A stretch of 64,000 nt of DNA from Tubulanus polymorphus (Eukaryota; Animalia; Nemertea): the NCBI RefSeq assembly GCF_964204645.1, contig NC_134030.1, positions 5,436,778-5,500,777 of the forward strand, read 5' to 3'. The position numbers and the translations under genes were made by a program. The notes beneath the pieces were generated by a model, which saw only the letters and a program-made list of their open reading frames with translations, did not search any database and was not told where the DNA came from. Positions 32,908 through 62,244 of this stretch are shown here, in pieces. The stretch's first letter is position 1. Each line of letters opens with the position of its first letter.

Positions 32908-35900
32908 TTTGACTTAATTCGGAGAAATCTGGGCAGGCCCTATACAATGAGTTATACCGTATTCCAAAACGTCTTCAAAGAAAGGATGAAACATTTAAAT
33001 TCAAATAAACAGTCGTTGTTCGAGTATATCGTGTTCAATTCTTATAAACCGCTCTTTTCAATACAATTCGATCCGTTTTAAATTTTAGCTGTTTTCGGTA
33101 GAATTACTTGCATCAATAAGACGTGATATGAGATAAATGCGCATTAGATTTGCTCGCGCAAAGAGCGCGTCATCAATCTAGTTGAACAATTTGCGAGGAA
33201 GCTAAGAGTCTACGATGGGACTTTTCAGCGATGGCGGCATCCGCGCGGCATTTACTGGAAAACCTGATTATCTCAAAAATCAATAGACAAATGGGTCGTT
33301 AATCGATATTCGATAGTGACGAAGGATGCCATCATCGGCTGGTGTCCATCGGCGAGCCGCGATCACAAACAGCTAAAAAATTCGGTCGGTCCTCGAAAAA
33401 ATCGATGATCGAAAATCCGGACTCGGAAAAAATCGAGAAACCGAAGTCGAAAAATGATGACGCGTATATCAACACCGCCTTGGTCTGTGTGACATACGCT
33501 GATCGGGCGAATTGAGCCCTGACGGATGAGCGCACCAGTTCTGGTAGACACATGAGAGCAACTGAGGTCACCGCAACATCCATAATAAGGGCATTATCGA
33601 CGCGGCAAGCCTTTGATCTGAACGAGCGTCATCACTCATATCGTAGACTGAGTACAGATTCGCATGAAAGCCGCGTTGAGCCGTATTAATGTTCGCCGTG
33701 TTAGTAAGTTGCAGTAAGTTGCGGATTAATGAATAAAGAAAATATATATTTTCTCAGGCGACGTCGCTTTAGCGCGACGTCGTCGTGTCAAACCGAGCTC
33801 GAGGGAAGGGAAAAATTCGCCGACGGGACCTGTCGCCCTACCTGGCGATAGAAAATTTAACTACAAAGTTCACCTGCGCGCGGCGAGGCGCGGGAATTGC
33901 GAAAACAATTTCGCCAGGAAAAAATCTTTTCAATAGCAATTTTTAGAATTTACGTCAGCTAAAGGGAAGGGTTACTCTGTCATTGTTTACCCATTGAATA
34001 AGAATAAAAAATTGTGTTTATTATCTATAGTTTACCAGTTTAAAAAGGCTGCATACATAACATATAGAAGTCAGATAAAGCGACATGAATTTGAAAGAAC
34101 AAATAAATCGTTTAACATCGCTTTTTCTAGGAAAATATTTTGAAGAAGGCGTATGTTATTAGTCAGTTTTTCGGCATCTTTTATGAAAAAGCCAGCCTAT
34201 ACAGGCTTACAAGACAAATACGAAAAAAGAGAAAAATACATTGATTGAATATACATTACGGCGGTGCATTTATGAGTAAGGTTTATCGAACTCCTAACTA
34301 ATTTCAGGGCCATGTTTCACCAAAAGGTTAAACTCTTGAATTGGATTTGATTTTTTCATTGATCCGGTTTATCGATTTAGGAGCGAACTGGACACAGAAA
34401 TCAAACAAATGAGACATTATTCGCTTTGATATCGTTCACTAAACCAACTGCATAAAGTCCCGTGGTTTTTAGTGGAATTTCTTTGCTGATATCGAGTGTT
34501 TTATGGCCGCTCGGTCGTCAGATTGAGCGGCGAAAGAGAAAGAAAATGTGAGACTGGGAGATGACATCGTCAACGCGCAATAAAAACACAAAATATATGA
34601 TAATGGCTAAGAGCTTTAACGGCCGATATGAAAGCGATCATAATAGACTAGTGGCGACAGGTGACAAATCGCGCTTGTCACCGAGAACATCAAGTAAACT
34701 TTAACTATGACCGATATTAATTACCGTATGACTTCGCTCTCGTAAAATACAACGTCACGACAGCCTATCAGGGTTGTTACGTATAAGAACGAGTTCGGTT
34801 CTTCGACGGGATGGGATTACTATATGCGACAAAGTCATGAAAGCCGTGTTTTCGTCGTCGTCGGTATAAGTTTGTTATGATAATCGTTATTTTTTTTCCG
34901 TCGAAGTCGACCGACCGACTCTCTACTACGGCTGTTAGGCGGTCTACTTCCTCGGTAAAAAGCGCCGGCGGTGTCGTGGCTGATGATCAGCATTACGTAA
35001 GCAAAAGGAAATCGTGTGGCGAACATGGCCGAACAAAAGCATCGAAGTTTGGTAAGTTCAGTAAGTTACGATTTATAATTAACTTGAATAGGTGGCTAAG
35101 GATATCCCTCAGTTTTGTTGGTATATGGAATTAGGTATTTCTCGACTCTTACGAACTCAAATGACATGCAAATCATAGCCAGATTAGACGCGGTTGTCAG
35201 CCACATCTCAACCAGTGCCAACTTTATATCAAACCCCGTGCTAACAATTTCTCATTATCAAACAAAACAACGGGGTGTCGAAAAGGCGTCGGTAGGTAAG
35301 GCTACTTGTCAAGCCATGTCAGTTTATTTGATGGATCGATTGTGAAATAGCGTGTAAAAAGCTCGGAATGATTACTTCGTTTAACATGACAGAAATTGAC
35401 AGAAATTGACAGATCCCACTCAGTATACGTGTATTTTTGAACGTGATCACCGGTGAATAATATGTATAGGCCTGCACATGAAACATTGGGCGTAGTCAAG
35501 AGCCGGGGTTCAGAACAATTCCGCTAATGCCTTTTCTTTAAAGGCCGACTCAAATGGAGGTCCAAAAACCCACCGGTTGGTACCTGAGATTTGCAGTGCA
35601 GGCCACATCCCACTAGCAACTAGCAAGTGGTAGCCGGCGAGTATTCAGGTCATTATAACCTTTTAAACTTAACTCATTTCATCTCATCTCAATATTTAGG
35701 AGGAGGGCCTTCAGATTCCTTCTAATACCACATAGCCTACATACATTGTTTACAATTTAAACTCAAATTTTCCAGGTCCGCTTTCCAAAAATATGAAAAG
35801 TGATTATTTATGGTAAACGTATCGGGTTTCAAACCTGGTCGCAATAGCTTGAACGCTGAGAAGTTTCTTTTTTTTCTACTTTTTTCACGGAGATCACTAT

Positions 35901-37619: not shown

Positions 37620-37646
37620 TGATTGGCCCGCGCGTTCCATGTGATC
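37620..37646 (+). promoter_or_regulatory. Candidate intergenic promoter (ATTGG-N11-CATGTG), possibly for pri-mir-10
   Basis: GATTGGCCCGCGCGTTCCATGTGATC mirrors the Scr and Dfd promoter modules. It lies 5.6 kb upstream of mir-10 and is followed by a consensus donor at 38352. Confidence 0.5.
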
Positions 37647-38128
37647 GCGAATGCCTAAAAATAATGCCTCATATCGGTACATTACGAGCACACTAAATCA
37701 TAGAATAATTGCCACAAAGATACCACGAGGAATAATAATCTACTTGTTTTATGTTTCCTGTCGGCGGCGGCCGTGATCGGCTCATTTCTACCGCGCAAAT
37801 CTAGCATTCTTGCCGAGGATTATCTAGAGTACAATCACCGTGTTGTCTCTCATCACACAACGTGTGCTAAACGTATCACCCTCGCTTATTACGGCATCTA
37901 TGCGCCTGATTTTACCGGCGCTCATTTCTGCTCTATGGAGCTCTTTATTTTTCACTCGTCCAATCGCATCGATACTGATTTTTCTTCAGACGATATGCGG
38001 CGATATCGCTCGGAAAATGATGGTTGGGTTTTTTTTGCAGGGTGGCTGCCGGATCGGAGAAGCGATTAGTTATCAATTACGAGTGCCGTCAAGTGGAATA
38101 TAACGTAATAATCGGATGTTATCTGGAG

Positions 38129-38351
38129 ATGTGCGGCTATATTTTTGAAACGGGGGGAGGAATATCGGATATCGCGATCTGTTGGATGTATTCGTTCGTG
38201 TCGGATTCGAAACTGGATTTACGAGTTCGACCAATGGAGACCAGCGCCAGATTTGCACCTTACATCCTGGGTCACTCGCCATTGGTCGACAAGTCGGATT
38301 ATACGCGTCGAAGAAACCGAAAGATGACGTCATCGACCACCTATCCCTGGG
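38129..38351 (+). other. Candidate orphan first exon; short ORF ending in TYPW at donor G|GTAAGT (phase 1)
   Basis: In-frame ATGs at 38129 and 38234. Codons TAT CCC TGG at 38342-38350 are followed by G|GTAAGT. No transcript evidence is available. Confidence 0.35.
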
Positions 38352-41300
38352 GTAAGTTCCAAACTTAAATTCGATACTTGTAAAAAGCGAAACTTTTGAG
38401 ATTTCGATGTTGTTTTCAGCGTTTAGTTTCTACGAATTTCGCCGGCGATTAATCGATTCGCAATTCAAATGTCGGCGCCAATATTACAAACGCGTCATGC
38501 AGCCTGGCGTCCTGCATTTGCATATCGGATTTTGTATCCAATATGGCGGCGGTGACTAGTCTGGTACTGTAGTCGGCAATTATTGTTTTCGAGACGCAAT
38601 TTTCGACGGCTATTTACAGTCCCAAGAGGTATGGTAATACGGCAATTAATTACCGGATGTTTTCATCGATTAGCTACTGATAATTGCCACGTACTGGCCT
38701 TACCGCGGCCATTAGTCTGAAAGGTTTTCGGACGTGCGTCGCATATCTTATCGATCGAAAGTCTATCGAACGTTTATTCCTTTCGGAAATTTATTTCTTG
38801 TTCCGTTGTCGTAGTTTTAGTTATTTCTAATTTTGCTCGTTCTTTAGAGAGAGAAAAAATACGAACTTCTTTTCGTGACCTGATTTTAATTATTTATTCA
38901 ACATCTGCGGGTTAGTAACTTTACTTGTGGGGTGCGGGTCGACACTTGACCCAGATCACGTTTTATCGCTTTGATGTTTCCCATCCCCTGATACAGACAC
39001 GTTTATTGCCCAATAAATCGCCGGCTACCGAACGCATTTTGACGGCTACAGGCCAACTGAGTGCGCAATAAATTCACCCGCTGTCTCGGTCGCGCCGAAG
39101 CCGCGTTGATTTACCGCCACAACCTCGCTTTCGCGTCGGCGGCCATATTGCCTATTCTCCTTATAAGGCACCGACAAAAGAAGCCGATGCCGACGCTTAA
39201 TGACTAACTTATGCGGCTCTTTGTTGTTGTCAATGGAAACGAACACTTTATATGCAAAAATCGTAACTAAGAAAGGTCGCCGCTTTGACCCGACGAGATC
39301 CTAACAGCTCTGGTATATTTATGATGTTAAACAGTTGCTATCTGGTTCGTTTTTGATGTTTTCGATAATTTATATCCGTACTTCCGTTTAGTTTTTACGA
39401 CGCGCACAGTGTTTAGAAAATAACAACTGCGGCGCTATTAACCTTTGAATTATATTTCGGCTTACGAAATTTGAATATTGTTACCAAGGCGATGCCCGTC
39501 TATCGTGCGAGTCATTGGATCGTCGGTTAAGTTATGCGGCGAAAACATGTTTTATTTCAGATATTTTTATGTAAAAACGGCCGGGTTAATTATGACAGTG
39601 TATTCCATACTTATACCGTATGTTATATCTCGCCCTCGTCCGTGCAAACTTTATATGTAACGTGACGGTCTAATTTAATTCATCGCGATTTCTGTCGTTT
39701 ATAACTATAAATCTAAGGCGGACAGGCGCTCGCTTCACTTCAAAAGAAACGACTCGCGTTATGAATACGTTTTTCCAAAGACGATCTACATTATCAATTT
39801 TTCATAGTCAAAGATCATACGCGCCGCCTCGGTCGCTCGCAACAATTTGTAACCAGTCAATTTTAGCATTTGTATCTCAACGCCGTCGAGACCGCGACGA
39901 AAATCGTAGAAAAAAAGAAAAATTCTCTGAGTTTAAAGTTGAGAAATATTCTCTTAATGCATTGTGTTATATAAGTTTTTCAAAAATTCTTAAGTTGAAC
40001 TAGATACGAATTATAATCTATGGCTAGGTGAAGAAAATTTGATTAAAAAGTGAAATACATTGGCCATTATTTAGTAAAATATCTTATATATTGAACTACG
40101 TATTGTGTGTGTTAGGTTAAATTTTGTCGCAATTTGAAGGAAATAGAGACATAATATATACATTTCTCATGGCTGTTTTCGTTAATCCTTACACGAATCA
40201 TTGTCCAGTAAACGAATTATAGAATCGCAAATTATTGTGTAAACCTTGACTTGATTCGTTTATCGATGCATCGACGCTTAGGTTTGACAAATTTGTAGTA
40301 AAATAGAATGACGAAAAATATCTGAAAATTCGGCTTTATATGTTACAGTGTTCAAACGCGATAACGTATTCGCGAATATAAGAATGAAAATGTCCACTGA
40401 TATATCACATTTTTGTCGGCGATTATTAATGCGTGTTTGATTCTATTTGGGTTGCGCAAGGGATTCAAAGCCAAGAAAAAAAGTCGAGTAACAATTAACG
40501 TCATGTCGTAGATTATCACGGCATGGACTTCGTTACATTCTATAACGATGACTAGGGCGATGGGAGTTTGAAAGGTCAGTATTTTAACCCGATCTGGGCG
40601 GCTAACAGATCGTTACGCAGTTAATACGTTCATTTATATCGACGGCTCTAACGAGGGTTAATTAGCGATTTCTTTACGCGTGGTCAGTGAATGTGTCACT
40701 ATGACGGATGTTGCTAATCCGGCCCGATTTTCCTAACTCACGCCGTCGTCTCTCGCCCGATCGGTGCAGTAATATACTCGGAAACTTCCAGAGCTCATTT
40801 CGCTAATAGTCGGACATATTTGTCATGCGTTTTACCCCGTTTTCCCCTGTCAAGCGTTGGCCCCGGACGATTTGTTTCGACCCCTCGATGATGGGTTCAT
40901 TTTTCACGAAGGCTTTCGTGACTGATGGTCGTAATAAAACGAGTATTCGGTCCGTGTTATCATCTCCACCGGCCTTGGCAGAAACCGATGTCATAATACC
41001 AACATCGATTTACCATCCAAACAAATACAGTAATCATTTCATGGCAAATATTTGAATGAGCGAATTTTTCTTCGATAATTGTCCCGGAAGTGCTTATAAA
41101 AATCTAGCGCCGCCTATGGGATATATCTCAAACTAGCGCGCGATCGGCGGCTTCCTTTGATCTGATACATCTGGTGGTGAAAACACGATCATAATCAATC
41201 ACCAGGCACGGCTCAAGACAGAAAATCGATTGTTCCATCTTTTGATATATCAATAATCGCGCGTCATCTGAAAAGAACTGATCTGCGGTTTCTGAACAGA

Positions 41301-43204
41301 TGTGACTATCACGCGTACGCGTTCCGACGCTGTTTTTTTTTTAATGGTGACTCCGACAATTGACGGTGTCGCCACCTGTTGCCATATGACACAAACGAAT
41401 AAAAACAAAAAATTTGCAATATACAAAAAAAGACATTTCTCGAAAGAAAGCAAATAACTTTAAGATTAGTACTCAGTGTTTACGAACTACACTTTGTATT
41501 GGTTATTTCATGGTATAGTATATTGAATGTTCGAACTTTTGAACTTGCGTCAATGAGACATTTTTAAAAGAATTTTTTTTCAAACTAGTTTGTATATGTT
41601 TTATCCAGAATGGTGTATCAAATAATATCATTACTAGGACACAAAGATATAGGCCCTAATATAATTTGTCTTTGGGTTCTCATGGACGCGATTGTTCATT
41701 TTACTCTTTTGACGATTCTAAAAGAAAGTACGAAATTGAAAATTTGCATGTTTATCGCATTACCCTGCTACAGTAGACATGTGATATACTCTTAATATCA
41801 CGGGATATACAGTTCAAAAGACAAACAAGATAAAATTGGAAGTCTTTTGTCCAAACTAAGACTGATCTCAAATTTATGGGGCCATAAACATCACCGTCGG
41901 GCCGCCCACAATTAAATAATTCCATTTAACAACAGACGTAGAATAATGTGTTTTCTCAAAATACATAAATATTACCGGTCAGCGTGCCTTATGGCGGTGA
42001 AGTTAACTTACTGACGCCTTTTCTAATAGTGAATCGGGGTCTTCCTGGTCTCCAAAGAGGCTGCGGTCATTTCTTCGGAATATATATAAATATGTGCAAT
42101 CTTATAAAGGAATTTCGAATCGGAAACGGTAAGAGTTTATCAGAATTTCATGTTTTTCGGTGGATGGTGATAATGCATTTAGGTAGAACGTTAAACATAT
42201 TAGTGTCAATGATACTATAGGGATAATCGGTGTTAAAGTTCTTGCTTTCGAGGTTATCTTTACTATTCACGCGGATGCAACAGAAACTTTTCCTACGGAT
42301 ATCATTTCATAAGTTCATAATGTCCATAATTTTTGGTGTAATAACATATATAGTCGCCGCTTTATCGATTATACATGTATACCGACTGTACCAAATGACA
42401 AGAACGTGTATTAGCTATATACAATTCAATAATTCATCGGTATGCATTCGCAATTTACTTTGATGTTATTTATAGTCGGTTTCTGACGATTTTACGACAT
42501 TTTTATGGCCGCGTGGTCTGGCAACTTGTACATGGTCCGACACCGATACTGTGTTACTGTCAATACGTTAGCAGACACAGCAAATATGCAAGCACGTTAT
42601 TGATAGGATATGTTCGGACATAACGAAACATTTTTAGAATATTTACATTTACAATATGTGTCTCATTGCAGTGGATACAATATTGAAGGTAATTATATCA
42701 ATACCGCACATTCTCAATTTATTGTGGTTACTGATTCAAGATTCTGATTCTTGCTACAAAAAACCTCAGAAAACAAGACTGCCTCTCATTAACTAACTAT
42801 GTAATGAATAGCGTCGTTAATTAGTTTTTTCTAATGGGTATTTTACTACTTAGCAATTCACGATCTAGTGACCTTGGCATTTGTTGTACAGCGGATCCAT
42901 AAAACAGAGCAGTGTAAATATTTCCAGCGTTGATAAGCAGTGAGTGATACAGCGCAATTTGCCGATATTTAGCGCTATTTCTCTTCACTGGCTGCTGAAC
43001 TATCGGCTGAACTGTCGTGCTTCCTAGAGGCGGTCGTTGTACGGACACAAAGACTCGGTCATTTTAGCGCTGGGTGCAGTTAAAGGATGTCGGGGTTGTT
43101 TGCCGGACACGTGAGAGACGACTGATCTTTTCGCCACGTTGACAGAAACGATTTTGACACGAAACGGTTTCGGCCGTTCGGAGCAGCCGACCGCCAAGAT
43201 TTGC

Positions 43205-43286
43205 GCACGAGCATCTACCCTGTAGATCCGAATTTGTGTATATATTTTCTCATACAAATTCGTGCCTACGGAGAGTCTGCTCGTGT
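43205..43286 (+). ncRNA. mir-10: microRNA mir-10 precursor (5p mature 43216-43237; 3p arm about 43255-43276)
   Basis: TACCCTGTAGATCCGAATTTGT is the canonical miR-10-5p. The 3p arm begins CAAATTCG, and the basal stem GCACGAGCA pairs with TGCTCGTGT. It sits at the conserved position between Hox5 and Hox4. Confidence 0.97.
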
Positions 43287-44683
43287 GGCTGAACAACTCA
43301 CGACTGTGTCTTCGAAGATGGCAGTGAAGAAAGATCTAGCCTTCCCTAACCTCGACGATTACCGTGCTCTGATTTCGAAGGTCTTACCGAATTCGCGTGT
43401 ACCCCGAACCTTATCCCGCTCCAAATGTTCCCCGAGAACCCAATCGTCGCTAAAACAGTGGCTTCTTTTTTCATGCATTATGCTAATTACCGTCGGCGTA
43501 TCGTTCACGGTGAACTGTCGAGATCCATCGCCATCTATCCACAAATCGTAGAACTGACGACGAGGAAGAAAATCTTGTTAGTTCTCAGTTTTGTCGCTTT
43601 ACCGGAACGGTGGCGCTAGTGGCTAGTTTCGCGGGTTATCGTTTCGTTTTTCGCGGCACGTTTTGTTGCTGCTAATTTCGAGGCCATTAAAATTCACAAT
43701 TGAGTAAAGAAAGTAAAGTTTGATGACTGCAGGTGCGTGTCGCACGTGTAATCGCTCGACAGATCTCGACAATTTCCATTTGTTAAATGCGATTATTTGC
43801 TGATGTTCGCGACACAAAAGTGTAATTACTGAAATTGAGCCCTTATCAGGGATGTAATCGTTGTTTCTTTTTTAATCTGAAAGCTTTTTTGTCGGGACCG
43901 TCCAGGAATATCCATAGAATGATAAACAAATTATTCATATTTCCAATTTATTAATAATGATAATAATAAATCCGTAGACTCAAATATATTTTCACTAATC
44001 GTCAAAATATAATATCTCATGAATAACAAAAGTCGAAATAATTCATACAAATAGCTTTTGTGTTTGTAAGATTCAAAATCCCCGTGACAGGTGATAAGCT
44101 TACTGAGAAACCATCTTTTAGCTTTTAGCTTGGTGGATTCTTAGGCAGTTAAAAACATTTTGAGCGATTTTACGATCGTTTAAAACATTATTCGCATTAA
44201 AAACAAGTTTCACGCATTCGATGGATCGAATTATTTGAAAAATATACATGATCACGTTTCGTAGCATTTCTCGAAGTGAAAGAATCGGAGAAAGTCCCCG
44301 TTTCGCTTTGACATGTGTTCCGTGACCGAGGGAAATTTGTAAGACGGATATCTTACTAAATGATCGTACATGATCGAATAAGGAAAAAAATACGTCGTAA
44401 ACATAAATCAAACTTCCAGATGGTCGTATATGATAATAGTATCGGGAAGAGCTGAGCTATCGTGACACCTTTATTCCCCGGTTGCCTTAATGTCTTGCCC
44501 ACCGGCACTTAAGAGCACGCACGTTTTAAAGGCTTTATTTTTTTTCAATTTTGTTGTCAATTTAATTCGTACCGAATCCTTGCCATCGAAAGGGCTGTAA
44601 TTCAAAATCTTTTTCCGTAGATATTATATGAAAAGAAATATGAAAATTCTTTGATAAGTTTTTAGATACGTATATACTGTAAA

Positions 44684-44770
44684 ATCCCACAATACAAAAA
44701 GAAGAAATGTCTGAAAGATTTCCTTGAAATGTAGTTTTTCGATTTTATTCCAACTAATAGTCATCTTCAG
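44684..44770 (-). repeat. Degenerate copy of the hammerhead-bearing repeat
   Basis: ATCCCACAA...GTCTGAAA...TTCCTTGA...CTAATAGTCATCTTCAG, collinear with the 25879 and 55192 copies. Confidence 0.55.
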
Positions 44771-44898
44771 GGGCCAGTTGCTCATAAATTGGTTAAAGAT
44801 AACCGGCGGATAAATGCCATACTATAACGATGAACTTTCATTTCGATGTCAACTATCGACTGTATAAATCTAAACAACTTTTGAGCGACTGGGGCCCC
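44771..44898. mobile_element. MITE with GGGCCAGTTGCTCA termini
   Basis: GGGCCAGTTGCTCA ... TGAGCGACTGGGGCCCC; related to 49354-49506. It directly abuts the hammerhead-like repeat ending at 44770. Confidence 0.65.
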
Positions 44899-47800
44899 TT
44901 CTTGACTACAAAGTTACAAATTTAAAAAAAAGGTTTTTCAAATATAGACATTTTATCCAATTTTCCGTGCGTTTTTTTTTTACTTGAAGTATACAACTTT
45001 TTAGTGAAAAGAGCATCTTTTTCTCGGCTCGTTTTTAAATTCGGTGTCGCGCGAAACCACCCGGTGACACAACGCGCCAACAACGCGATCAATCTGGATT
45101 TACGCGAATAATTTTCAGACGGGAACCCGTTGTAAATCGCTGATCCGTTTATTCGCTATTTATTATCAGCTGAAAACTGGCGATAAGCCGTCTCCTTATG
45201 GTTATAAGTCATTTCACTGATTTTCGAATTCGCAATAATAAATCGGCAAAATCTAATGGGGATATTATGATTAAGGGTCGAACGACGATGACGGCATTGG
45301 CTCGGAGTCGCGCTGCGAACATGACGGAGAAAGTGAAGATTATAAGATAAACACAGTGACCCCAAACCCGCCTATTTTTCATAAATGCTTCTTAATCAAA
45401 TAGACTTTGGCGTCGAGTTGTTCTGATGTGTCATCAACCGTAAGACATTGAGACAATACGAAAAACTGGCGTGAAAAATGTCTTTAAAAGTTATCGAAAG
45501 ATAGTAATAATGACTTTTGTAATATAAGAAAAACATGATTAAAAATAGATATAATAATAAAAACGCAACTATCACAATCTTCATGATGATAATGAGTTGT
45601 GATAGTTGCGTTTTTATTATTATTTAACTATCTGGATACTCTTCCGAAATTATATAAAGATAGATATGTTTGAAAATCATTTCTTCTGATGCGACAATTT
45701 AGAATTTTTTATTTTGCCCACGCATTGTAATCAGCGGATCAATCTAAATTCGCAAATTAACTTCGTAATTGTAAGAATCGTAATTAAGGTTCATTTTTGC
45801 TCCCCGACGCGGCGCTTCTGAATAGAATTCAAAATGAAAAAAAAAACGACGAAGTACCTAGGCGGGCGTTTCGTGCCGAAGTGATCAACGAAACTACGAC
45901 GGTTAGAGAGCCTAATCAATCTAGTCGAAGTAATTAAATCTTGCATTCATCGTGCAGTAAAAAAAATAAATCAAACGAACGCGTTAACGAAATTAAATGG
46001 TAAATTCATCAGATTTTACCGTTCACGTCCATTAGAGGCGAATACGGTAATCTCGTAATTGGGAATTCGAAAGTTTGAAAAAAAAGTCCTGAAAATTTAA
46101 TTTCGCTGTCGAAACGCCGGGTTTACCTGAATACAGGAAGCAAAGAAGTGAGAAGTAGCAAAAATATAAGTAATAAAAAAAACATTCAAGTAACGCTAGA
46201 CGAATTAAGAAATATAGATATATGTAAAAGGTGAATGAGACGAACGTTATTGCCAACTGAATTTTAACCGTGAAATATTTGCATCTTCGAATTTAGAACT
46301 ATCTTGTTACGAGATTTAACTGTTTTAAAACAAAAATCATAAAAATATGATTCCAGAATTATTTCCGTGATTCTTTGATTCTCGATCGCAAAATGATGCT
46401 AGTTTTTTTTTTTGTCGCGGCGCTATATCGTGCGGTGTCAGTGGGTGGTAGGATTTATGTTCGAAGTCATCGCGACGAGAGCCGATTCTTATCAGAAAGT
46501 TGATTTCTTTGCCCCCGCTGTTCGGAACACTTGATTAGAATCGGATATTTTCGCTTCAAATTAATATAAATGGAGGCAATTTAGAGAGTAACCTTCGTGG
46601 ATGTGCCGGTGTTAAAGGTTGAAATATCGCTTCCATGTTGTTATGTAATGTTGTCGGACTTAATGCTCGAATAATTATATCGTAGTCTTCAATTTAACGA
46701 CGACAGTTGCCGCACTCCGGGGAGACTTTCCGGGCTTTCACTTGGCTTCCTGAAAATTATAAATGAAATAGATTACTGCCCCGATTTAAAAAGGAAAACA
46801 CATATTTCAATTTCTAATCGTCGGTGTTGCTGTCACGCACCAGGAGTTAAAGGGATTTCTTGTTGAACTTCTTTCTTATCGCAGCTAAACTTAGCATTAA
46901 TTTCAATTAAATCTGTAAGTTTGAATTAGGTTTTAAATGACCGTCTTTGTGGTTGGCATTTGACTTTAAAGAAATCGGCGAAGCTTTTTCGTAATAACGT
47001 CGTAAATAATATTGTAATAAACGTTATAATACTGAATTAAAACGAAGGCGAAAGATTTAACTGCTCGTTTCGAGTCTCCCCTCGGAAAACGAACCTAGAA
47101 TTTTGTTCTGGCTTCTGTATTTCAACTGAACATTTTTGAGGGTGATATTATTTCATTGCGAACTGTTATTCTATAGTTTTTATACACCGCCTAGATACAA
47201 CAACCGGCAAAATACTCGCACGTTTCGAAGGAATTATTTTCAATTCGCTCTATACGATAATTAATACGTTTTTACGTCGCATTGATAAATCGATTGGTAA
47301 TTTTTCAGACTGTCTCTTTCTCTCTATTTCTATCTCTTGGTCATTTCTTGTGTGAAGTCGCAACATTCGAAATAAATTACGACTAACTGCTGTTCGCCGA
47401 GTTTAAAATTTCTATTTCCGCTATTCAACAAAAGGCACCGCTTAACTGTCTTCGTTTGAATGGAATAAAAGATGCGTTTTCTACGCTCGCATAAGTATGC
47501 TTATAAATTGGTAGTGGCTGTTTGTGTCGTCGTCGTCGTCTATGCGCGCTTTGATCTGGGTTACTATAGCATATACTCAAAGATGCGGCCGTTCAAGAGT
47601 CAATTCATGCTTTGAAAAGTGCTGTCCAAAAATCAGCAGTTATTAATGAACGTGGTGCGTAATTTAGCAAATCTATTGACGACGCTGTCAACCGAAGTTC
47701 GGAGATCTAAAGCGGCCGCCAGCGCCTCGCCGTGTTCTCTACAGCGCTACGAAACTCGACCTATTCGTTGGTGAGGCTTTGTAACGGCATAGAATATTTT

Positions 47801-49353
47801 ATTTTATTAATGATATAACTGTTGACAGTGTATACGGAAAGATGTTAATTCATAGTAATTTGCATATAGCACGTTGGTGCTTCGGTTTCTTTTTAATTTC
47901 GGAAGGCAAGAACATTCGTAATGCCCGATTTCCAGCCTATGAAAATGTTCATTATTTTTGCTGCATAGATGCTAGGATGGAAATGATACTAATTCAAAAT
48001 ACAAAGTTTCCATCTGTTCATTCTACAGTCCAGTTCTTCCTGGATAATGAAAAATTAATTGAGACGAAAATGTGTACATTTTCTGCATTTTCAGTTATAG
48101 AAATGTTGTTTGCGATGTGAATATCTTTGAGTACAATCGTAACTAAAATACTGTCAAATGTTGTTTGGAGTTTTCGCAAATTCTTCTCTTCAGATTTTTC
48201 CAGTAATTTCGAGATTATGTGACAAGCGTTGCTAAAAATATTCGCCGCGCGAATGAAATCCTTTGAAGTATTTTTTTTTCTTGCGCGTATACAGTAATGA
48301 GCCTGGACTGGCAAAGATAATGTAACCGGCCGTTACAGTGACACTGAGTAAATTAATGTGACCCATTAGTTAGTGTTGGCGCACCTGCCTGCCAGACACA
48401 CACACTTTATCGGTCAACATCGTATAGAAAACCCACCTTTCCACCGCTGCAGGAGTTCGATAAGACCGAAGCGCAGATTGTTAAAAAAAAAACTTTTTCA
48501 TCTAATTTCTGGTTTCATGAATTTCTTAAATCCACCGAGAACTTCATTTCTCCCGCAATATATAAATCCTAATGCATTGCTTCTGTTTACGAAGCTTTTC
48601 GCGAGCAACCCCAAATTGGATTTTAGAATTGATAACCTATCTTATAAACTCAATTAGATACTAAAATTGGATGTTGCACTTATTGAGAAAAAAAACGCTT
48701 GCGAATTTCAAAAGTACGAACAAATATGGAAAGATAATTTGTTTCCGCAAATTGGAACGATTTGCATCAGCATTTTAAAAATTCTAAATATGAAAATAAA
48801 TCGTGACATAGATCGAAGAGATATAGTTAGTTGTTATTTGATTTACCCTGATCTGATAGTTCCATATGATAAATGACTCGGAGCAAAGCGGCCACGAAAA
48901 GAATTTAAACGTGTACGAAAATATTGAAAATGTCACATTCGTATTCATTATTTTTCTCTTCGGAAAGAACTGATAATTGAACAATTCGCGCCGAATCTTG
49001 GTGATATTTCTCGGTCGTATATTTCGAGGCTTTGAAATCTTCGGATTAAACAATAATTTGAAAACGGTTTTCAATCTATATACATGACACCCAGTGGTCT
49101 ATCAGTAGATGTTCAAATATTCTACTATTTAATTTCCGTATATGTAAACACCTCTGGGTCTCTTCTAGAGATATAATTACTTTCACCATGGATGTATAAA
49201 CTAGTTTTTAAGTCCACGTTATCCTTTATTGGCAAGAGCCATTCAAAGCGCCAATCACACCTAGGTGGTGCCCTGAAATATGCCTCCATATGTGCTGAAA
49301 TGACCCAGCCTACAAACAGTCAGTTGCTTATGAGTGACAATTAAAATGTCCAC

Positions 49354-49506
49354 GGGCCAGTTGAACAGAAGTTAGTGAGTGGCGATTAAAATTGCATTGT
49401 AATCATGGCATTTAACGATCACTAGACTCTAAACAAGTTTTAACCATTTATACCATAGTGTTGCCACGGTTTGTCCGACTTTAACCAACTTTTGAGCAAC
49501 TGGCCC
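49354..49506. mobile_element. MITE with GGGCCAGTTG termini
   Basis: GGGCCAGTTG ... CAACTTTTGAGCAACTGGCCC; its 3' end is nearly identical to that of the 44771 copy. Confidence 0.65.
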
Positions 49507-52500
49507 CCGGTGTCGTGTTTCGTAGGGTTAAAGTTGCAGTTCCCGCCGACACGCGTCGTGAGTCGCTGGCCGTTATACAATATACTGTACGGGTCGTTGG
49601 AGGCAATTTACACATTAGTTTACATCACAATAAACACGGCTTTGTGCTGCTCGGAAATCAATTCGAATGAAACTGCTAAGTGGGTAATTAACGTGACCCG
49701 TGATATAAACAAAATAAATCATCTGAAAACAACTCTTTTTTAGATATTTCAATCTCGATGACTTAATTGAACACTCGGGACGCTGTTTTATAGCGAACGT
49801 AATAAGAAATCGTCGCCGGCATCGCCGCTATTCCCGCGCAGGTTAATTACCTTTCAATATCGAGGAGGAATTCTCCGCAAATAAATGATACCCGCGTATA
49901 TCCCCGCGAAAGAATCTGAACTGTGATAGATATTGCGAGTCAAGATTTCTTGAATATGCGAGTAACGGTCATTCTAACGGTCATTCTAGATGGGGCTACA
50001 CGAAATTGAGTATTAAGCTCTTCTCGAATTGCTGTGAAAGAAATTTGGTTTGTCATGTTCTAATCCTTAAAAGAACAAACAGTTTCATAATTTCTGATAC
50101 ATCTTTCCCGATCCTACAAACAACATCATTTTAAAACATTACATTTTCGGCAATTTTTCCGAGACTCGATCTCGTATTCGAAATAACGACTCGCCGCCGT
50201 CGTAATGAAAGCCGTGCAGCGGGCGTGAGATCAGTGAGGTGCATATTTTCCACTCATAGCTGATCATTAGTCATTCTCATCTCGCCGACCGATTTGTTCA
50301 TTGTGTGTTTTCTCGTCGAATGATAAGAGGCGGCGAACATCAAAGGCAGACGTTTTTGTGCTCCCGGTGGCGGCTTTTCGGTTACTTTTGAAACGATTCG
50401 AGAATAAGAATAGCGTACACGAATAGAATACGCACAAAATACAACACGGATCGGTATACAATATACGCAATATACGTGTGTCCCAGTCATTTGCATCTTT
50501 CATTTCGTCTAATCAAAAGAAGTTAGTGTACATTGTAGTAAACTTTCAGTGCGGACAACAGCTTTAGTTTTTCTTGACAACGGACTTTTTAATCAGACCG
50601 TCCCCGGTACGCGGTGTCTTCGCCAGAACGTATCTGGACGTCGGCCGATCGTTTATCCGGTGTCGCCTTCGCCAGAATTGATTGGTATTTACATCAAATA
50701 TTTGCTGATACTTTGTCATCGATACATTTCAATGAGCTGTTTGGCGGCCGCACTGCTGGTCGCGTATTCTGACCTGGTGTTGTGTCGACGGACAGACAGA
50801 CTGAGGCCAGTTCTTTGTCTCATCTGTGATACACTTATATTTGTCAAGTGGTCTATATATATATATACTGGTGAACAAAAAGTGCCGCAGTTTATACATA
50901 AATGACACTCGGTTTGTCCAGATTTCGACCTTTCATCTTACCCGCAAAATTACGATTTATTGGCGTTTGTCATTTCTAAATCATTCGCGGCTGATTCGCA
51001 GTCATTTCAATTATTTCAAAGTATATATTCCCACCTGACGATGGCTGGGAGTGGACAGTCGAAACGTTGTTACTAACAAAAATTCAAAATTAGCAGATTT
51101 CGTACTTTTTCGTTTATATTGTGATATTCTATTGCATTTTCTGGTTTTATTCTATGCGCTGTACGTACTCTGCAGTATAAATTCTATTACATTTTTCTAT
51201 TCGCTTATTACGACTACGAAGTTAGTTCGAGTAAAGCAGGGCTAACAGGACGAACAGGGACTTCCTTTGCTTCGTCGAAAGAGGCAAAACTAAACAGTTT
51301 TCGCAGAGTTAAGGTCAAGGTCGCGCCGAATACAATAATAACCCTACGTCATTATGGAAACGTTATGTTTATGATATGAGTGAGATTGCTAGGAACGTGC
51401 GTTGCACCTTTCGCGTACTGATTATCAATCAAGACCGGCCATAAAAACGTCAGTCCACGAGGGCTAGTCTGCTATCCATCCAGCTTTATAGACCCGCTGT
51501 GCTGAACAATGATACGTTTTAGTGTCCTTTCGTTCATTTCAATTAAGTTGATTAAACTCTTTCTCTATCAATGGGAATCTAGATTTTAGAACGATTTTAG
51601 AAAAGAGCGTTATTTATCATCATTTTTTGCGACATATTTCGAGATTTCGATGAGTCAATATTGAACATATTCGACACCGATACCGACACTGAAGTCGCGC
51701 ATGAAAATGCCGCAAGCGAAACTGTTCATATTTGCGACGGCGCTATCGGTGCTGGTTAGTTGTTCCTGGACGAGGTAGTTTGTCAAGTTATGGTCGAGAT
51801 AAAATTTTACGCGGGTTACGTTGACAAATTATTTTGCCGCCTGTTGCGTCCAATAACGTAAAGTCACTCGTATCGATTTGTGTTATTAATTTCACGGATA
51901 TGATAACATCATTACACCGTATTATATGTCCATTTGTTTCTTTCGCCTCGCACATGTTTTTCGACGTGGACCGAGCCGCAAACGCGTCCAATCTGATTGC
52001 CATCGGCACGATGTGAATTAATTTCTTTTTACGCAACTGCCAACTTGACTCGTGCAGGAAATATCGGTCTTCCTGTTGGCATAGCAAAGCATCGCGTATG
52101 ATCACAAGCCACCGTGTAATATTGAAATCACTGCTTGATTTAGTGTTTGTTTCTTATCTTGTTCCTTTTTGAAATACAACAATCTGTTGAATTTTAAAAA
52201 TGTTGTTACTCGGAATCTTAGATATTATGACATTTTTTCTTTAAGTCTACCAACACAACAGATTTTATTGCGGCTTAGTCGGAGTTGAAATACGATCGTA
52301 AGCGATATCCAATTGAATAGTTGCGTATATAATTCTATTATTACGTTGTACTTTCCCCGCATAGATCATACTTACTAACAAAGATATTATCGATAATAAC
52401 GCATATATGTCATCGAGATTTTGAATACGTTTTAAGAGCGATTTTATGCATAAATTAGAAATAGGCATCTTGATTGGGACGGGTAACTACGGGACACACG

Positions 52501-52999
52501 TGACTTTGACAAGCCGTCGCAGCCTTTAAGCCGGACTCGAGCCGATCTTGAAACACTGTCGCCAAACGCCAACCGCCGAGCGAAGTGTTCAAATCGAGAA
52601 CTAGAAGTTTAGAGGAAATTCGAAAATGTTATAGTGCTGTGCGGTACGCGTGGATATAACAGATAAATCTCTTTTGCATCATAAATCGTGCCGGAGCAAT
52701 ATAAATCGCAAAAACCATAAAACTAACACAAACGATACGATCTCAATGAACGGTTGACTTTTATTATGGCATCCGTGACACATTTATGACCTGATTCGAG
52801 ATAAAAGCGGCGTATATGAGATATTAGTATCGTCTGCGTATATCTACGAAGCGCTGCGAGCTCTTTTTGCCATTAACTTCGGATTCATTTCATTTTCTAC
52901 GTTTGCGGATGGATTTTAAGCAAATTTAACTGTTTTCGTCGCGCGCCGCTTACACTTAACCTTCGTTTTGCCGCAAAAAGCGCGTTTCAAGAAGGTCAA

Positions 53000-53080
53000 A
53001 GCTGTCAATGCGTGATTGATGCGCTCGGGTCAAATTTAATCGTTTCCATTGGTTGATTTATGCACGTGACTACGTAAATC
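53000..53080 (+). promoter_or_regulatory. Dfd proximal promoter: Meis site, Pbx-Hox sites, ATTGG-N10-CACGTG
   Basis: CTGTCA at 53002-53007, TGATTGAT at 53013-53020, ATTGG at 53048-53052, TGATTTAT at 53054-53061 and CACGTG at 53063-53068. Confidence 0.72.
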
Positions 53081-53161
53081 TACATGTGGGGGCGTGGTTA
53101 TGTTAACTCGACAACGACAAGTAGAGAGAAAAATTATTCCTACTCAATACCGTCAAAATTA

Positions 53162-53576
53162 ATGACCATGAGTGGGTTTTTGATGAACTCTACTCCGTAC
53201 GCGGATCCTAAATTTCCACCGAGTGAAGAATATTCGCACCACAACTATATCCATAATCAAGGACCGGAGTATTTTCGGCAACAAGGGGAAAGTAATCCGT
53301 ATAGCTATTCGCATCATGCGGAGAATGTTGTTGGAGGCGGCCAGTATCAGGAGGATGTGAAGGATTCGTACGGCGCGATGCCAGGCAACTATGGCTGCTA
53401 TATGCACGGTTTAAACGGGCTGCCCAGGATGCCTGGACCGGACGGTATGTCGATGAACTGTAACATGGCCATGGGCGGCATGAACATGGAAAATCAAAAT
53501 CCGCAGTCGTGTGTGCAGGGTAGCAATCAACCCGTAATCTACCCGTGGATGACCAAGGTTCACTCCGGTAATTCAG
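53162..53576 (+). CDS. Dfd: Deformed / Hox4, coding exon 1
   Basis: Starts MTMSGFLMNSTPYADPKFPPSEEYS, the diagnostic Hox4 N-terminus. Hexapeptide VIYPWMTKVH; donor CAG|GTATGT at 53576/53577 (415 nt, phase 1). The ORF-track start at 53084 is probably too far upstream. Confidence 0.94.
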
Positions 53577-53684
53577 GTATGTAAAGATTTTTCTACACCT
53601 CTTCTTACCGAGGGCTCCCGGTTCCTTATGTGTGCTCCTGGCACCTCCATCGCCTTCTATACGTTCAAACGCACGCGTCAGGGG

Positions 53685-53797
53685 AAATTTATGTCCATTA
53701 TGGGCCATAAAATACATTTTACTGGGGCATTTTTTCACCTCGAAGCTAGTTACATAATTACAGAGGCCATAATCGTAAATCACCCCCATCAAATGGC
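53685..53797 (+). promoter_or_regulatory. Dfd intronic homeodomain-site cluster (HB1-like)
   Basis: TTTATG, CATTA, GGCCATAAA, TTTTAC, TAATTA and CGTAAATCA (Pbx-Hox on the - strand) are packed 110-220 bp after the donor. Confidence 0.6.
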
Positions 53798-55191
53798 TTT
53801 CGACACAATGACGGGACCGCGTCTAGGCTATAAAAACGTACTTGATCGGTACCATCGAAATGTATGACAATTTGTTTTAGATAGTGTCATTGTTTTGTCC
53901 CGTTTATGCATAGTTGATAGCTGGGTATATACGATGCATACACAGACGGAGGCCGCTGTGTTACGCTGTATGCGCGACAGCGAGATCATTAAAAAACGTT
54001 TAATCGGAAAGAAATTAACCCCCAGTGAATAACGAAATGAAGACTGTCAGTATTTTTTAAGCCTACGATTTGTTGTAAATTTATTTGTAAAACTGGGACT
54101 GGTGGAGTACATGAGTAAGTGGGATGCTGGTGTAATGGCGGTGCTATGCGGGTGACTTGTGTGAGTAAGACTTTTACGCAGGAGCTGCAATCAGCGGTTG
54201 TTATAAACCACCGAACTATCAGCTGTAATTACATTCAATATTGGGCATTTAAAATCGAATTCATTTTCTGCTACACAGCATAAATGCACAACGGTCTGAT
54301 TCGCTTGAATAACACTCTTTACCAGTAATCTGTTTGAAAAGTTTGCGCATTTTCTCGTTACTGTTCAAGATTGAACGCCTTCTCAGCAACTACGAAACGC
54401 AGAAATGCCGGCTGTTGGGATTTAGTAGTTAATGCTTTTAAACTTGGTCCACGCAGTTTAGGGCTTGAATGGATTTTTAAAATCTGCATTGTTGCTTCTT
54501 TTGGAGTTTTCTATCCTGGCGTTGAGTAAACAAGCTCATTAATTTTAGAATTTACTTTCGTCACATCTGCCGATGAAAGGATGAAAATGTCCTCCGTGTG
54601 CAGCTGCCTCTGTACGTTATGACATTTTCGGGGTCTGTAATTATTGTTGATGACAGTCGCCGACGGATTAGCGGGACCCGGTTTTCTTACTTACTCTAAC
54701 GGTTCAATATCGCATATATATATATATATGTATCATACGTTCGTTTGAATAGGTTAACGCTTAAAAGGTATAATAATGATAACGCTTAAAAGGTATTAGG
54801 CTGGCGCAAATGTTGGAATCATATGTTCGCCACGTGAAAAGATTCCGAATCAGCTGTTGTTTTATCGACGAAAAAGGCACAGACAATCCGGGATAATCGA
54901 CAATCAAAACGCAATAAGGCACGACAGATCCCGATATTGATTGATGTCGATGATGTAGTGGTATCCCGAAATGACGTAGTAGGTATGACGTAACAATACG
55001 GTAGTTTAAACGTCTTTTTGGATATCCGAATTCGAGACGTGATCATAGATAGAATTCATATCATCTATTATTCGGTATATATAGAATGCAGACTACTAAC
55101 CGGGCTTGCCCCGCGCTGCATATAGTTTTCCGATATTTTCGTATGTCACCATATGTTATATCGTGGAATATAGAGGGTAATAACCATAAGA

Positions 55192-55366
55192 CGAAACACT
55201 CTGTCCGTGTTGTAACAACGACATAAAAAAATCCCACACTAAGAATAAGAAATTGAGTCTGAAATGTTACTTTTACCCATTAGTTTATTCATCTTAACTG
55301 AAGTTTACATTCCCATCGTTAATTCAACGTTTCGACTATGTCCCGATAGTCATCTTCGGGAATACT
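55192..55366 (-). repeat. Penelope-like repeat with degenerate minimal hammerhead ribozyme (core 55322-55365)
   Basis: The - strand reads GTATTC-CCGAAGA-T-GACTAT(CGGGAC)ATAGTC-GAA-ACGT-T-GAAT: stem I, CUGANGA-like core, stem II, GAAA and palindromic stem III. Confidence 0.65.
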
Positions 55367-56364
55367 AATCTTGTGACAAAAATGTGAAGCTTATGTACAA
55401 TCCAATCTCTTCAGGGAAACATTTCGGTCTCTATATTCCGTTCTTAATGTGGGATTTTTATATAATAGGGGGTCATTCAACCGCAATTCTTTCATTCAGC
55501 ATCTACCGGCGAACTAGATTTTTTCAATGTCCATTCTTCTCAAATGATGCGATGCATTCTCGTATTGCCACCATCCCGTGCGTCTCTCCCTCTTTACATT
55601 TCCCATTTCCGGATTTCTCATCTTCTGTTTACGTCTTGCGCGGCGCCGGGATCCGAGCGGCGGTACGCTACGTGCACGGTTGAAACATCAAAGCAAAGCC
55701 GCCTTGTACACGCTTCCACATTAGTGTTTTATTGCAGGCTCATTATAACCTCATCAAACTTTGTTATGACACCGCTTGACCCAAAAAATATCCCCGAGCA
55801 CAGTAAGCCATTCAACGAGTAAAATGATCATAATTTTATTGCCTGGAATGGCCATTGAAAGACCGGCTCATTAATCTGTTAGTACCGTTATACACCGGGA
55901 CAGATTGAAAAGCTAAAAGATCAACGTCTCATAAACGATCCCAGAATATGAGAGGTCTGATCCTGCAGTTTATCAAAAACACACCAACGCCGATCTTGAT
56001 ATCGATTACCCGCGCACATATACGTGGAAAAAATATGTATATGCTTTTAATCGTTCGTGGGAAAGTCGACAGCAACTTGTTGACAGGTTTGACGCGGTTT
56101 GATGTTGATGAATGACCCTCCCGAACATCAAAGCTTCCGTGTGATACCTGCGTAATGCTGGAAACACTCGCAGTAGTTTCATACTGACCTGATTTACAGG
56201 AATGTGCAGTATATACTCTGGAGGAAAGCTGCAGAAATACTGAACACATTTTTAATTCGCGTTGTCAGAGTCCCAACTTTTCATTGCGAGCGTCGTTGTG
56301 GGTTAGCCATAGTCTTGTGGGATTGCCAGATCATCGCAATAACCCTAATGGAACCAACCCATTA

Positions 56365-56519
56365 CAGTAGACTCCGCTCGAGTCGGATCAACTCGGATAT
56401 TCTACGGAATGTTTCGTTAGAACATTATTAATGAAATACATAATATCCAACTAAGGATATCGGCAAACTCGGAGACATTTTTACGGTGCCAAAAGGTCCG
56501 ACTCGAGTGGAGTCGACTG
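56365..56519. mobile_element. Tc1/mariner-pogo-type MITE (155 bp)
   Basis: 23-bp TIRs CAGTAGACTCCGCTCGAGTCGGA / TCCGACTCGAGTGGAGTCGACTG (2 mismatches), flanked by TA on both sides. Confidence 0.85.
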
Positions 56520-57404
56520 TAAATATCGATCAAGTTCAACAAAGTGACGCGTATAACCCCGAACACCGGGTGATGTAATTAAAGAATTTATAGCTGCAAT
56601 TCGAAGACATTACCGACTGGAAGAAACGATATCTTAATCCTTTCGGGCATACACGCACGTGCAGCGTGAAATAGAATAATAATCGCCCTTTCAATATAGA
56701 AACAAAATAGAGACGTATTACACTACGTATAGCTATAACACAACTCGTGATAAGAGGCCATAAACTATATCAACTACACCGAGATATTATTGATTCCGCT
56801 GTTATTGCGTTGATATTATTGTCGCTGATTCAACATTTTCATCATTAAATATTTATGAGTCGGATGAGATTCACAGGTTTTAGGATTATCCGATTGCCCG
56901 CGTAGATTTGTCTGATAAACCGCTTTTGTCGTTGCGAGGATTTTTCCGTCGTCTTTTCTCTAAGCACGAGGTGCCTGGATATAGGAATACTCGGCGGGTA
57001 AAATCAACACTTGGTGGCAATATGCGAGTCCATTCTTCGATCGATTCAATCAAGAAAAAAATGTTCTCAAAACATAGATTTTATTTACACCTCACCTAAC
57101 CTAATCTTGTATGTGGCACGTTGAGTGTGTGGGTTGACGTGTCCATGTAATTTCATTTCATTGAGAAATATATACACCCTAAATTTTGATTTCTTATAAC
57201 GATATGGTTGCGCGCAAAGATTCGATCTCGGAACCTCTTTCTCTGATCTTTTCAGATCGTCCCACCACATCCATTCGGCCACGTTCACCCATTGATTAAC
57301 GCCATGCTTGACCAAAACTCATCGGGGTCATACCGAATTCATCGAGAGACTAAGGAATCCCCGCTGCTGACGTCATTCGTCTGGAAGGGAAGCCTCAAAT
57401 CAAT

Positions 57405-57527
57405 GAAACACTCCGTCTGCGTTGTAACGATATAAGATCATATCCCACAATATGAAAGAAAGACAAATTCTAAAAAGTCTCGTAAGACTTTTCTACTTTA
57501 TCCTAATAGTCATCTTCGGGAATACTG
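57405..57527 (-). repeat. Degenerate copy of the hammerhead-bearing repeat
   Basis: GAAACACTCCGTC...GTTGTAAC...ATCCCACAA...ATCCTAATAGTCATCTTCGGGAATACT, collinear with the 55192 copy. Confidence 0.6.
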
Positions 57528-60500: not shown

Positions 60501-60723
60501 CCAGATCTATGGGCTGTGTTGGCATGCGCCAGTTGTATACGATACGATCACGAGCAGATTATGGTCCCGCAACAATAGTTGCTTTCTCGCAGACGTGTGA
60601 AAAAATGCTGATATTATGAGCTTATCGTCACGAGATATCTCGGCCTGCAGCGAGATCACTCATGTACTACAAGATCTCAACGGGAGATGGTCATATCGAT
60701 ATAAAGAACCCATGGTAGTGACC

Positions 60724-60826
60724 TGGTTGTGAGTTAGAATTAACTCTCTGAATTGAATAAAGTTGGTTCATTTTCAACGAATTAACTCTCGAGTCAATTT
60801 ATAACTCAAAACTGTGGAACTGAGTC
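60724..60826 (-). mobile_element. MITE family C, copy 2
   Basis: Reverse complement of 32800-32895 (GTTGTGAGTTAGA...TTCATTTTCAA...AACTGTGGAACTGA). Confidence 0.7.
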
Positions 60827-61790
60827 TTTGAAAAATATCATAGGTCATTGTATGCTTTGCCTGCGGGTCTTCGCATTAGGCTCCACATTCGGCGGTGAAG
60901 CCCTAATAAATGTACTTGACTAATGTTAACATTTCACCCCATCCAAACGAAAAACAAGGTATATAATAGTTCGGCCCAGAAGGATTGACCCCATCCACCG
61001 TCTTCTTTGGTAATGAGGGTTTATACCATGTGCTGAATTACATTTTTTGCAAATAAAACTCTAACTGCCAAAATAAGTTCTTTAACAATTCCCCGAAGGA
61101 TTAACCCCTCCCACTGTCTCCTATTGAATTCGGAGGGCTCCATTTAGTGAATTACCTTCCCGCCGGTAAATCTGTAGCCAAACCGATCAAAGGATGACGT
61201 CACGATACATTGTCACCGACTGACAACGGGACGAGGATAATAGTAACGAATGATGATCCGTTAGTTGGCGACTTATGTTCTCGTGTTTTCGGTGATTATC
61301 ATTGTGTGCACAGCACGAACCGTGTTAGTAACCACATCAATGAGATCGCGACACGAGATCACGTAATTAATTATCATCGAGTATGGCCATGCTTGAATCC
61401 CCGGTGATTCATTATTTGTCCTGAAAATACTATCTATCCCCCGTAGACGGTTTATCATCTATCCGTCGGTGCAATCTTTTTTTGTGCCCGCTCGTCATGA
61501 CACTACAGACGCGCTTTTTCACAAATAAACTATTTTCCGGTTAAGTCAGTTCAATGATCATCACGATTTGTGTGACAAATTTTAAAATCATATACCGAGC
61601 AACACTATGGGCATTATCAGTTATGAATACGTTTCATGTTTCCTTGAACTTCTTACGTCAGAGGCTAGAAAGAAAAAATCGCTCGCCTCAAGGGTTCGAG
61701 CCCCAACAAAATCCAAATTCCGAGGGTTTATTAAAGGAATTCGATACGTGTATCTAAAATGTTGTCATTCATTTTATTTTTTGTTTTCAG

Positions 61791-62098
61791 ACGGCCACAG
61801 TAAGAGAACGCGAACCGCCTATACTCGCCATCAAATTTTAGAACTCGAAAAAGAATTCCATTACAACCGTTACCTAACTCGCCGACGGAGGATCGAAATC
61901 GCGCACTTACTCACGTTGTCCGAGCGACAAGTAAAAATATGGTTCCAAAATCGACGCATGAAATGGAAAAAGGAACACAAATTACCGAACACTAAAATGC
62001 GTTTAACGGACACGACGGACCTGCGGCCGCCGCAACTTACGGATTTATCAGTGGTCAGCTGCGGTCCCCCGGACCATCGAACAGCCTTGACTACTTGA
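61791..62098 (+). CDS. Dfd: Deformed / Hox4, coding exon 2 (homeodomain 61799-61978)
   Basis: Acceptor ttgttttcag|AC. Homeodomain [60 protein letters not shown] is followed by the Hox4 parapeptide KLPNTK. Spliced CDS is 723 nt (240 aa). Confidence 0.95.
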
Positions 62099-62209
62099 CA
62101 TTCGTTTCATTTCAAAGAGATAATAATATTTATTATGTCATCAACTTCATTGTCATCATCATCGTCATTTGTGATCTCGGGTAACCAGTGACCTGTATGT
62201 GTATATATC

Positions 62210-62210
<1 letters not shown>

Positions 62211-62241
<31 letters not shown>
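62211..62241. repeat. (TA)n microsatellite in the Dfd 3' UTR
   Basis: Direct inspection. Confidence 0.95.

Positions 62242-62244
<3 letters not shown>

Follow-up and report, generated by a model that had tools for sequence, protein, structure and literature searches.

The window analyzed here, a 64,000-nucleotide stretch (G000:C6:5436778-5500777), covers the stretch from Scr to Dfd in the intact Hox cluster of the palaeonemertean Tubulanus polymorphus; coordinates above 64000 are window numbering extended along the chromosome. The cluster comprises ten consecutive homeoboxes, all on the + strand: five that precede Scr, and then Scr, Dfd, Hox3, pb and lab. Scr and Dfd fall inside the window, and Hox3, pb and lab, each with its own hexapeptide exon, were read from the DNA beyond it. 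The peptide of Dfd exon 1 is 100% identical to the RefSeq Hox-B4-like protein of Tubulanus polymorphus. The Dfd 5' leader (window 53077-53238) is 78-83% identical to the Hox4 leaders of other animals (L020:10012-10173, L018:10029-10175) and stays open in frame from an upstream AUG (53084), whose counterpart is where the Lineus RefSeq protein begins. Between Scr and Dfd lie the mir-10 hairpin and, upstream of it, a spliced unit whose exons we call A and B; a third exon, C, lies beyond Dfd (Table 1).

Table 1. Features of the unit between Scr and Dfd and of its splice partners, in window numbering (the slash in G/GTAAGT marks the exon-intron boundary)
Feature	Position	Strand	Remarks
Exon A, upstream, probably first exon	34743..35051	+	3' end from RNA; 5' end predicted
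CCAAT/E-box (NF-Y/USF-type) module	37620..37644	+	Same type as at the true first exons of Hox genes; a candidate for a second promoter, proximal
Unspliced RNA contig	37768..37963	.	Depth 9.6, run X2
Exon B, 311 nt	38041..38351	+	Acceptor 38039-38040, donor 38352; stop-free in Dfd homeobox frame
Open frame from first in-frame AUG	38129..38351	+	Further AUGs 38186, 38234, 38324
YPW codons	38342..38350	+	1 nt before donor
Route 2 intron	38352..64000, on past window end to exon C	+	Loose end on 2096-nt contig
Putative homeodomain-site-like motif cluster, intronic	38610..38715	.	Motif count
mir-10 hairpin	43206..43285	+	5p arm from 43216; fold z -3.8
Normal Dfd/Hox4 coding exon 1, with YPWM	53162..53576	+	Skipped by both splice routes
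Dfd homeobox exon, coding part	61791..62098	+	Route 1 target; RNA loose end maps to 61791
Exon C, 59 nt	Extended 69894-69952 (G000:C6:5506671-5506729; L002:6671-6729)	+	5' end from RNA; 3' end predicted from G/GTAAGT donor

Four sequencing runs were assembled on 37400-43399, none of them labelled RNA on record, and their nature was told from their contigs. Runs X3 and X4 yielded scattered pieces with a recurring linker, as in proximity-ligation libraries, and the 2015 run X5 yielded no contig on this interval. Run X2, from the same sample as X3, yielded a contig at 38040-38351 with three loose ends. The first of these, before 38040, maps to 35021-35050, after which comes a G/GTAAGT donor at 35051; this is the 3' end of exon A, in which no acceptor-like site was found and whose 5' end we place from 308 unaligned RNA-contig letters, assuming no further intron. 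The other two leave donor 38351: in route 1 it is joined to 61791, the start of the Dfd homeobox exon (depth 15, the exon contig having 20; both are contig means, which cannot firmly rank isoforms), and in route 2 to 69894, after an AG acceptor 7.8 kb beyond the Dfd stop, in a 2096-nt contig of depth 22.7. All three are exact GT-AG joints on the + strand with depths of 15-23, and all use full-consensus G/GTAAGT donors, of which there are only seven between Scr and Hox3. Others of these donors lie at window 37158 and at extended 70052, 83850 and 95771-95919; the last has a strong acceptor and may be a further leader exon. Run X3 spans 38307-38646 without a break and the exon B region is single-copy in the genome; hence the junctions are splices rather than the trace of a deletion or a retrocopy. 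The RNA basis is one run (X2) from one animal, in the form of contigs only, which carry no strand, start or level.

The best-covered RNA form takes exon B as an internal exon, entered at acceptor 38040 from the exon ending at 35051. An earlier note on this DNA, made from the sequence alone, lacked this acceptor and had described the unit as an orphan first exon, a description that the RNA does not support as it stands. Other parts of the same proposal came through: the X2 contigs contain, at depth 15, the predicted in-frame splice from 38351 to the Dfd acceptor at 61791; the mir-10 hairpin falls inside the intron so defined; and no homeobox was found from exon B to Dfd, the ten homeoboxes standing in their usual order with none there. 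The further suggestion of an alternative first exon for Dfd or a downstream Hox3 survives in part, in that the Dfd junction is real and the route past Dfd fits Hox3 with the unit as a leader, while the main RNA form does not have it as a first exon and the Hox3 fit is not that of a homeobox fusion. The unspliced contig at 37768-37963 has about twice the coverage of the intronic background (intronic pieces of depth 3.7-5.6), which hints at the 5' part of a proximal first exon starting behind the module at 37620, or at pre-mRNA.

Exon C probably ends at 69952 and is probably a Hox3 leader, in which case route 2 would continue into Hox3. Thirty letters of the 2096-nt contig were read beyond exon B; what remains of it has the right length for Hox3 exon 1 (from an acceptor at 120860) and exon 2 together with about 700 nt of UTR. 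In both Tubulanus and Lineus the Hox3 CCAAT/E-box module is preceded, at a distance of about 35 nt, by an acceptor-like site. In RefSeq one Hox3 protein of Tubulanus carries three accessions, and in Lineus a single isoform carries at least four, which is consistent with several leaders. On the Hox3 route, the YPW frame of exon B would be an upstream ORF whose stop at 120947 leaves two bases to the Hox3 AUG. Acceptor-like site and module together take up extended 120860-120916 (L098 ~9913-9975 in Lineus); the module would be exonic in long transcripts, and the Tubulanus acceptor is a tandem NAGNAG (120860 or 120863). Two other arrangements were rejected: exon C joined directly to the Hox3 homeobox exon would be out of frame, and the idea that exon B supplies an absent exon 1 to Hox3, pb or lab fails because each has its own.

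The mir-10 hairpin is intronic in both routes, in the introns 38352-61790 and 38352-69893, and the mature miR-10 sequence has an exact match at 76 metagenome loci. Three miR-10-5p seed matches lie behind the Hox3 stop (extended 129283, 129621 and 129701; G000:C6 ~5566060-5566480); Dfd, pb and lab are followed by one or two, and the 1.4 kb behind Scr has none. A repeat search returned nothing besides this hairpin, and an Rfam scan of the window at gathering thresholds gave no match, missing the hairpin despite its standard 5p arm. An intronic X2 contig at 42967-43189 ends 17 nt before the 5' arm of the hairpin; this end may be a mark of processing or may reflect low depth alone.

Upstream of exon B, at 37620-37644, lies the CCAAT/E-box module that the earlier note had given as ATTGG-N11-CATGTG at 37622-37643. 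Under the strict pattern the window has two matches, one in the exon B unit and one at Scr, where 0.02 would be expected; the genome has 81, and the reversed control 4. The module is a real motif class in the Tubulanus polymorphus genome, and in looser form it marks the first coding exons of the five genes Scr, Dfd, Hox3, pb and lab. A spacing of 10-12 bp from CCAAT to E-box has already been described (PMC4889920). A similar module 3.5 kb upstream of pb exon 1, at extended 151962 (L010 region), coincides with no known first exon and is possibly an upstream pb promoter. The claim that the unit copies the first-exon layout of Scr and Dfd holds for the order of its elements, namely module, YPW, phase-1 donor and motif cluster, but only in part for their distances. 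The YPW lies 720 nt downstream of the module, within the 394-812 nt seen in true Hox exons, and it alone is at the roughly 700 bp that the earlier note gave for the ORF; the in-frame AUGs are 507-612 nt away, where true Hox first exons have 57-155 nt, and the donor comes 1 nt past the W codon, against 25-52 nt in five true Hox first exons. The dense TAAT/TTTAC-type cluster pointed out at 38610-38715 is indeed there, with a motif count in the top 0.7% of same-size windows, though the window was delimited after the fact. Also as described earlier, the YPW sits at the consensus donor G/GTAAGT (38351/38352) in phase 1, and its linker is very short: 3 residues separate it from homeodomain position 1, whereas normal Dfd has 12 and other Hox4 proteins 16-23.

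Read in the frame of the Dfd homeobox, exon B runs through 103 codons without a stop, as do 0.8% of GC-matched non-coding windows, and the chance of YPW as the last three codons of an exon is about 2-3e-5 per position. A 103-codon open frame ending in YPW is hard to get by chance; these small probabilities weigh less because it was the YPW that singled this exon out in a very large scan. Read into Dfd exon 2, with frames followed by coordinates and the exons searched apart, the frame gives 176, 157, 141 or 111 amino acids from the AUGs at 38129, 38186, 38234 and 38324, respectively. Seven AUGs precede 38129 in the spliced form, exon A contributing six and exon B one; from a proximal start there would be eight, plus one at 38116 (nine). 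Two uORFs crossing from exon A end at 38067 and 38101, and the AUG at 38324 has an A at -3. The codon score of exon B is intermediate, with 7% of non-coding windows scoring as high and 24% of coding ones as low; one training exon was one base off, which costs the test a little of its weight. The YPW has no M after the W. In Abd-B-class W motifs the linker is roughly 5 residues. The Lineus Hox3 gene (L098; P0054-P0056) has three isoforms with W-to-homeodomain linkers of 22, 34 and 47 residues, so nemerteans do vary this linker by splicing. Set beside the YPWM first exons of Hox genes, exon B shares the YPW codons, the phase-1 donor and the upstream CCAAT/E-box module; it differs in the absent M, the 3-residue linker, an AUG more than 500 nt from the module and its internal place in the main RNA form. 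It thus has the phase-1 in-frame splice but fails as a canonical hexapeptide first exon.

A word search of protein collections found no homologue of the exon B peptide, and no annotated isoform was found. Across 1.84 billion proteins, phmmer gave three weak matches (E ~2e-4) to residues 6-51 and not to the YPW end, all to long repeat proteins (one of them, P0049, a bacterial-type repeat protein), which we take as chance. In an Atlas search the peptide reached a best score of 0.81, within the shuffled range; exon B matches only itself in its own genome; and Pfam returned nothing for three overlapping ORFs at 37773-38368. Neither at the DNA nor at the protein level is there any likeness of the unit to five Hox first-exon regions or to about 50 Hox4 and Hox3 proteins. 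The flanks covered in relatives were those of Lineus Dfd and Hox3 (10 kb) and two animal contigs extending 22 and 36 kb upstream of Dfd, none of which reached mir-10. At 76 metagenome mir-10 loci, apparently from distant animals and 11 of them with more than 5 kb upstream, neither the strict module nor a YPW donor was found.

With modest confidence, we lean toward the unit being a regulatory host transcript of mir-10 with weak translation. Of the features of a mir-10-hosting polycistronic Hox transcript, exons between Hox5 and mir-10, an intronic mir-10 and an exon shared with Hox4 were found here, while the route past Hox4 is predicted to reach Hox3. Exon B would belong to a long sense unit starting between Scr and mir-10, at exon A (~34.7 kb) and perhaps also at the 37620 module. 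The RNA joins exon A to exon B and exon B to either the Dfd homeobox exon or exon C, passing over mir-10 and Dfd exon 1 in the one case and over all of Dfd in the other. Such a transcript would be the mir-10 primary transcript, with Drosha cutting mir-10 from the intron, and its position would give miR-10 a more posterior, Scr-like expression domain. It would also run through the Dfd promoter and may damp the more anterior Hox genes, its own Hox3 message included. The YPW frame could yield a short form of Dfd, probably held at a low level by the upstream AUGs, as uORFs do for iab-8.

Several known systems bear on this interpretation. Zebrafish hoxb3a splv2, the host of miR-10c and also a target of its repression, has one exon between hoxb5a and hoxb4a and another two between hoxb4a and hoxb3a (PMC2148072). 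The Tubulanus unit is like it in having a start and an exon between Hox5 and Hox4, an intronic mir-10, a further exon between Hox4 and Hox3 and miR-10 sites in Hox3, and unlike it in having two exons before mir-10 and a Hox3 link that is so far a prediction; moreover, hoxb3a splv2 is not described as spliced into the Hox4 homeobox exon or as having a YPW frame. In mammals, the polycistronic units HOXD4-3/mir-10b, Hoxb4/mir-10a and HOXC6-5-4 (PMC1831499, PMC3185001) similarly share an upstream exon among different Hox genes and carry mir-10 in an intron of a Hox4 transcript initiated upstream. The upstream exons of mouse Hoxd4 are, however, non-coding and precede the coding region, whereas in Tubulanus Hox4 exon 1 is skipped in favour of an in-frame substitute. 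The iab-8 RNA of Drosophila is spliced to exons of abd-A, and its uORFs keep the level of a truncated protein low (PMC11463788, PMC3359974); there too the host RNA of a microRNA extends into the Hox gene next on the anterior side and splices into its downstream exons, though the microRNA and locus are different and iab-8 has no reported hexapeptide-like motif. In the fly, pri-mir-10 begins 6.8 kb upstream of the hairpin and is polyadenylated 700 bp downstream of it (PMC3290615), ending soon after the hairpin with no demonstrated reach to Dfd, whereas the Tubulanus unit reaches Dfd. For annelids, antisense Hox RNAs have been described and polycistronic ones only suspected (bioRxiv 10.1101/2021.01.30.428931). 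In the literature searched, which covered few subscription papers, we found for spiralians only antisense Hox transcripts and no mir-10/Hox4/Hox3 polycistronic one, no alternative YPW exon of any Hox gene, and nothing on the Tubulanus cluster.

Two observations sit poorly with a mainly regulatory transcript. It leaves unexplained the 103 stop-free codons in the homeobox frame and the terminal YPW. Splicing of iab-8 into abd-A is about 500-fold rarer than termination (PMC3359974), whereas the Dfd junction is not rare (15 versus 20) and makes up a large share. A rival reading, which we regard as possible if rather doubtful, has exon B as a selected coding exon: a second N-terminus of Dfd, giving a protein of 111-176 amino acids whose own W motif is separated from the homeodomain by only 3 residues. 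This protein would be made in the mir-10 domain and would alter or block Pbx/Exd-dependent binding. The in-frame Dfd junction at depth 15, the openness of the whole exon in the homeobox frame up to its last three codons and the Hox-type module at a distance typical of true exons all speak for it, as do the uORFs ending at 38067 and 38101, which would permit re-initiation, and the A at -3 of the AUG at 38324. Against it stand the missing M and the linker of 3 residues, the at least seven upstream AUGs, a codon score between coding and non-coding, the lack of any homologue or annotated isoform, and the choice of the exon from a large scan for its YPW. We think it unlikely that the junctions are by-products, with pri-mir-10 RNA sometimes reading on and taking the next acceptor to give spliced products without a role. 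Long Hox transcripts of this kind were proposed to be noise (PMC2148072) and the intronic contigs do show unspliced RNA in X2, but the three junctions stand above this intronic background and use full-consensus donors throughout. Least probable is the relic idea of the earlier note, under which the unit would be what is left of the first exon of a duplicated Hox gene, its own homeobox gone and that of Dfd used instead: the order of its elements recalls Scr and Dfd, but there is no sequence similarity to Hox first exons or to Hox4 and Hox3 proteins, the AUG is far from the module, the donor directly follows the W, and none of the ten homeoboxes is missing at exon B. Nor is a gene between Hox4 and Hox5 to be expected in bilaterians.

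Long mir-10/Hox4/Hox3 transcripts occur in vertebrates and have been proposed to explain both the kept place of the microRNA and the clustering of Hox genes (PMC1831499). A matching layout in a palaeonemertean suggests that the arrangement is either old or has arisen repeatedly, and the idea of mir-10/Hox polycistronic transcripts is now testable in spiralians. If the YPW frame is translated, Hox4 would have two independent tryptophan-motif exons, and the choice of splice would switch the Hox-Pbx interface in a manner tied to the production of miR-10. The short isoform would then be a natural test of the minimum linker between the W motif and the homeodomain.
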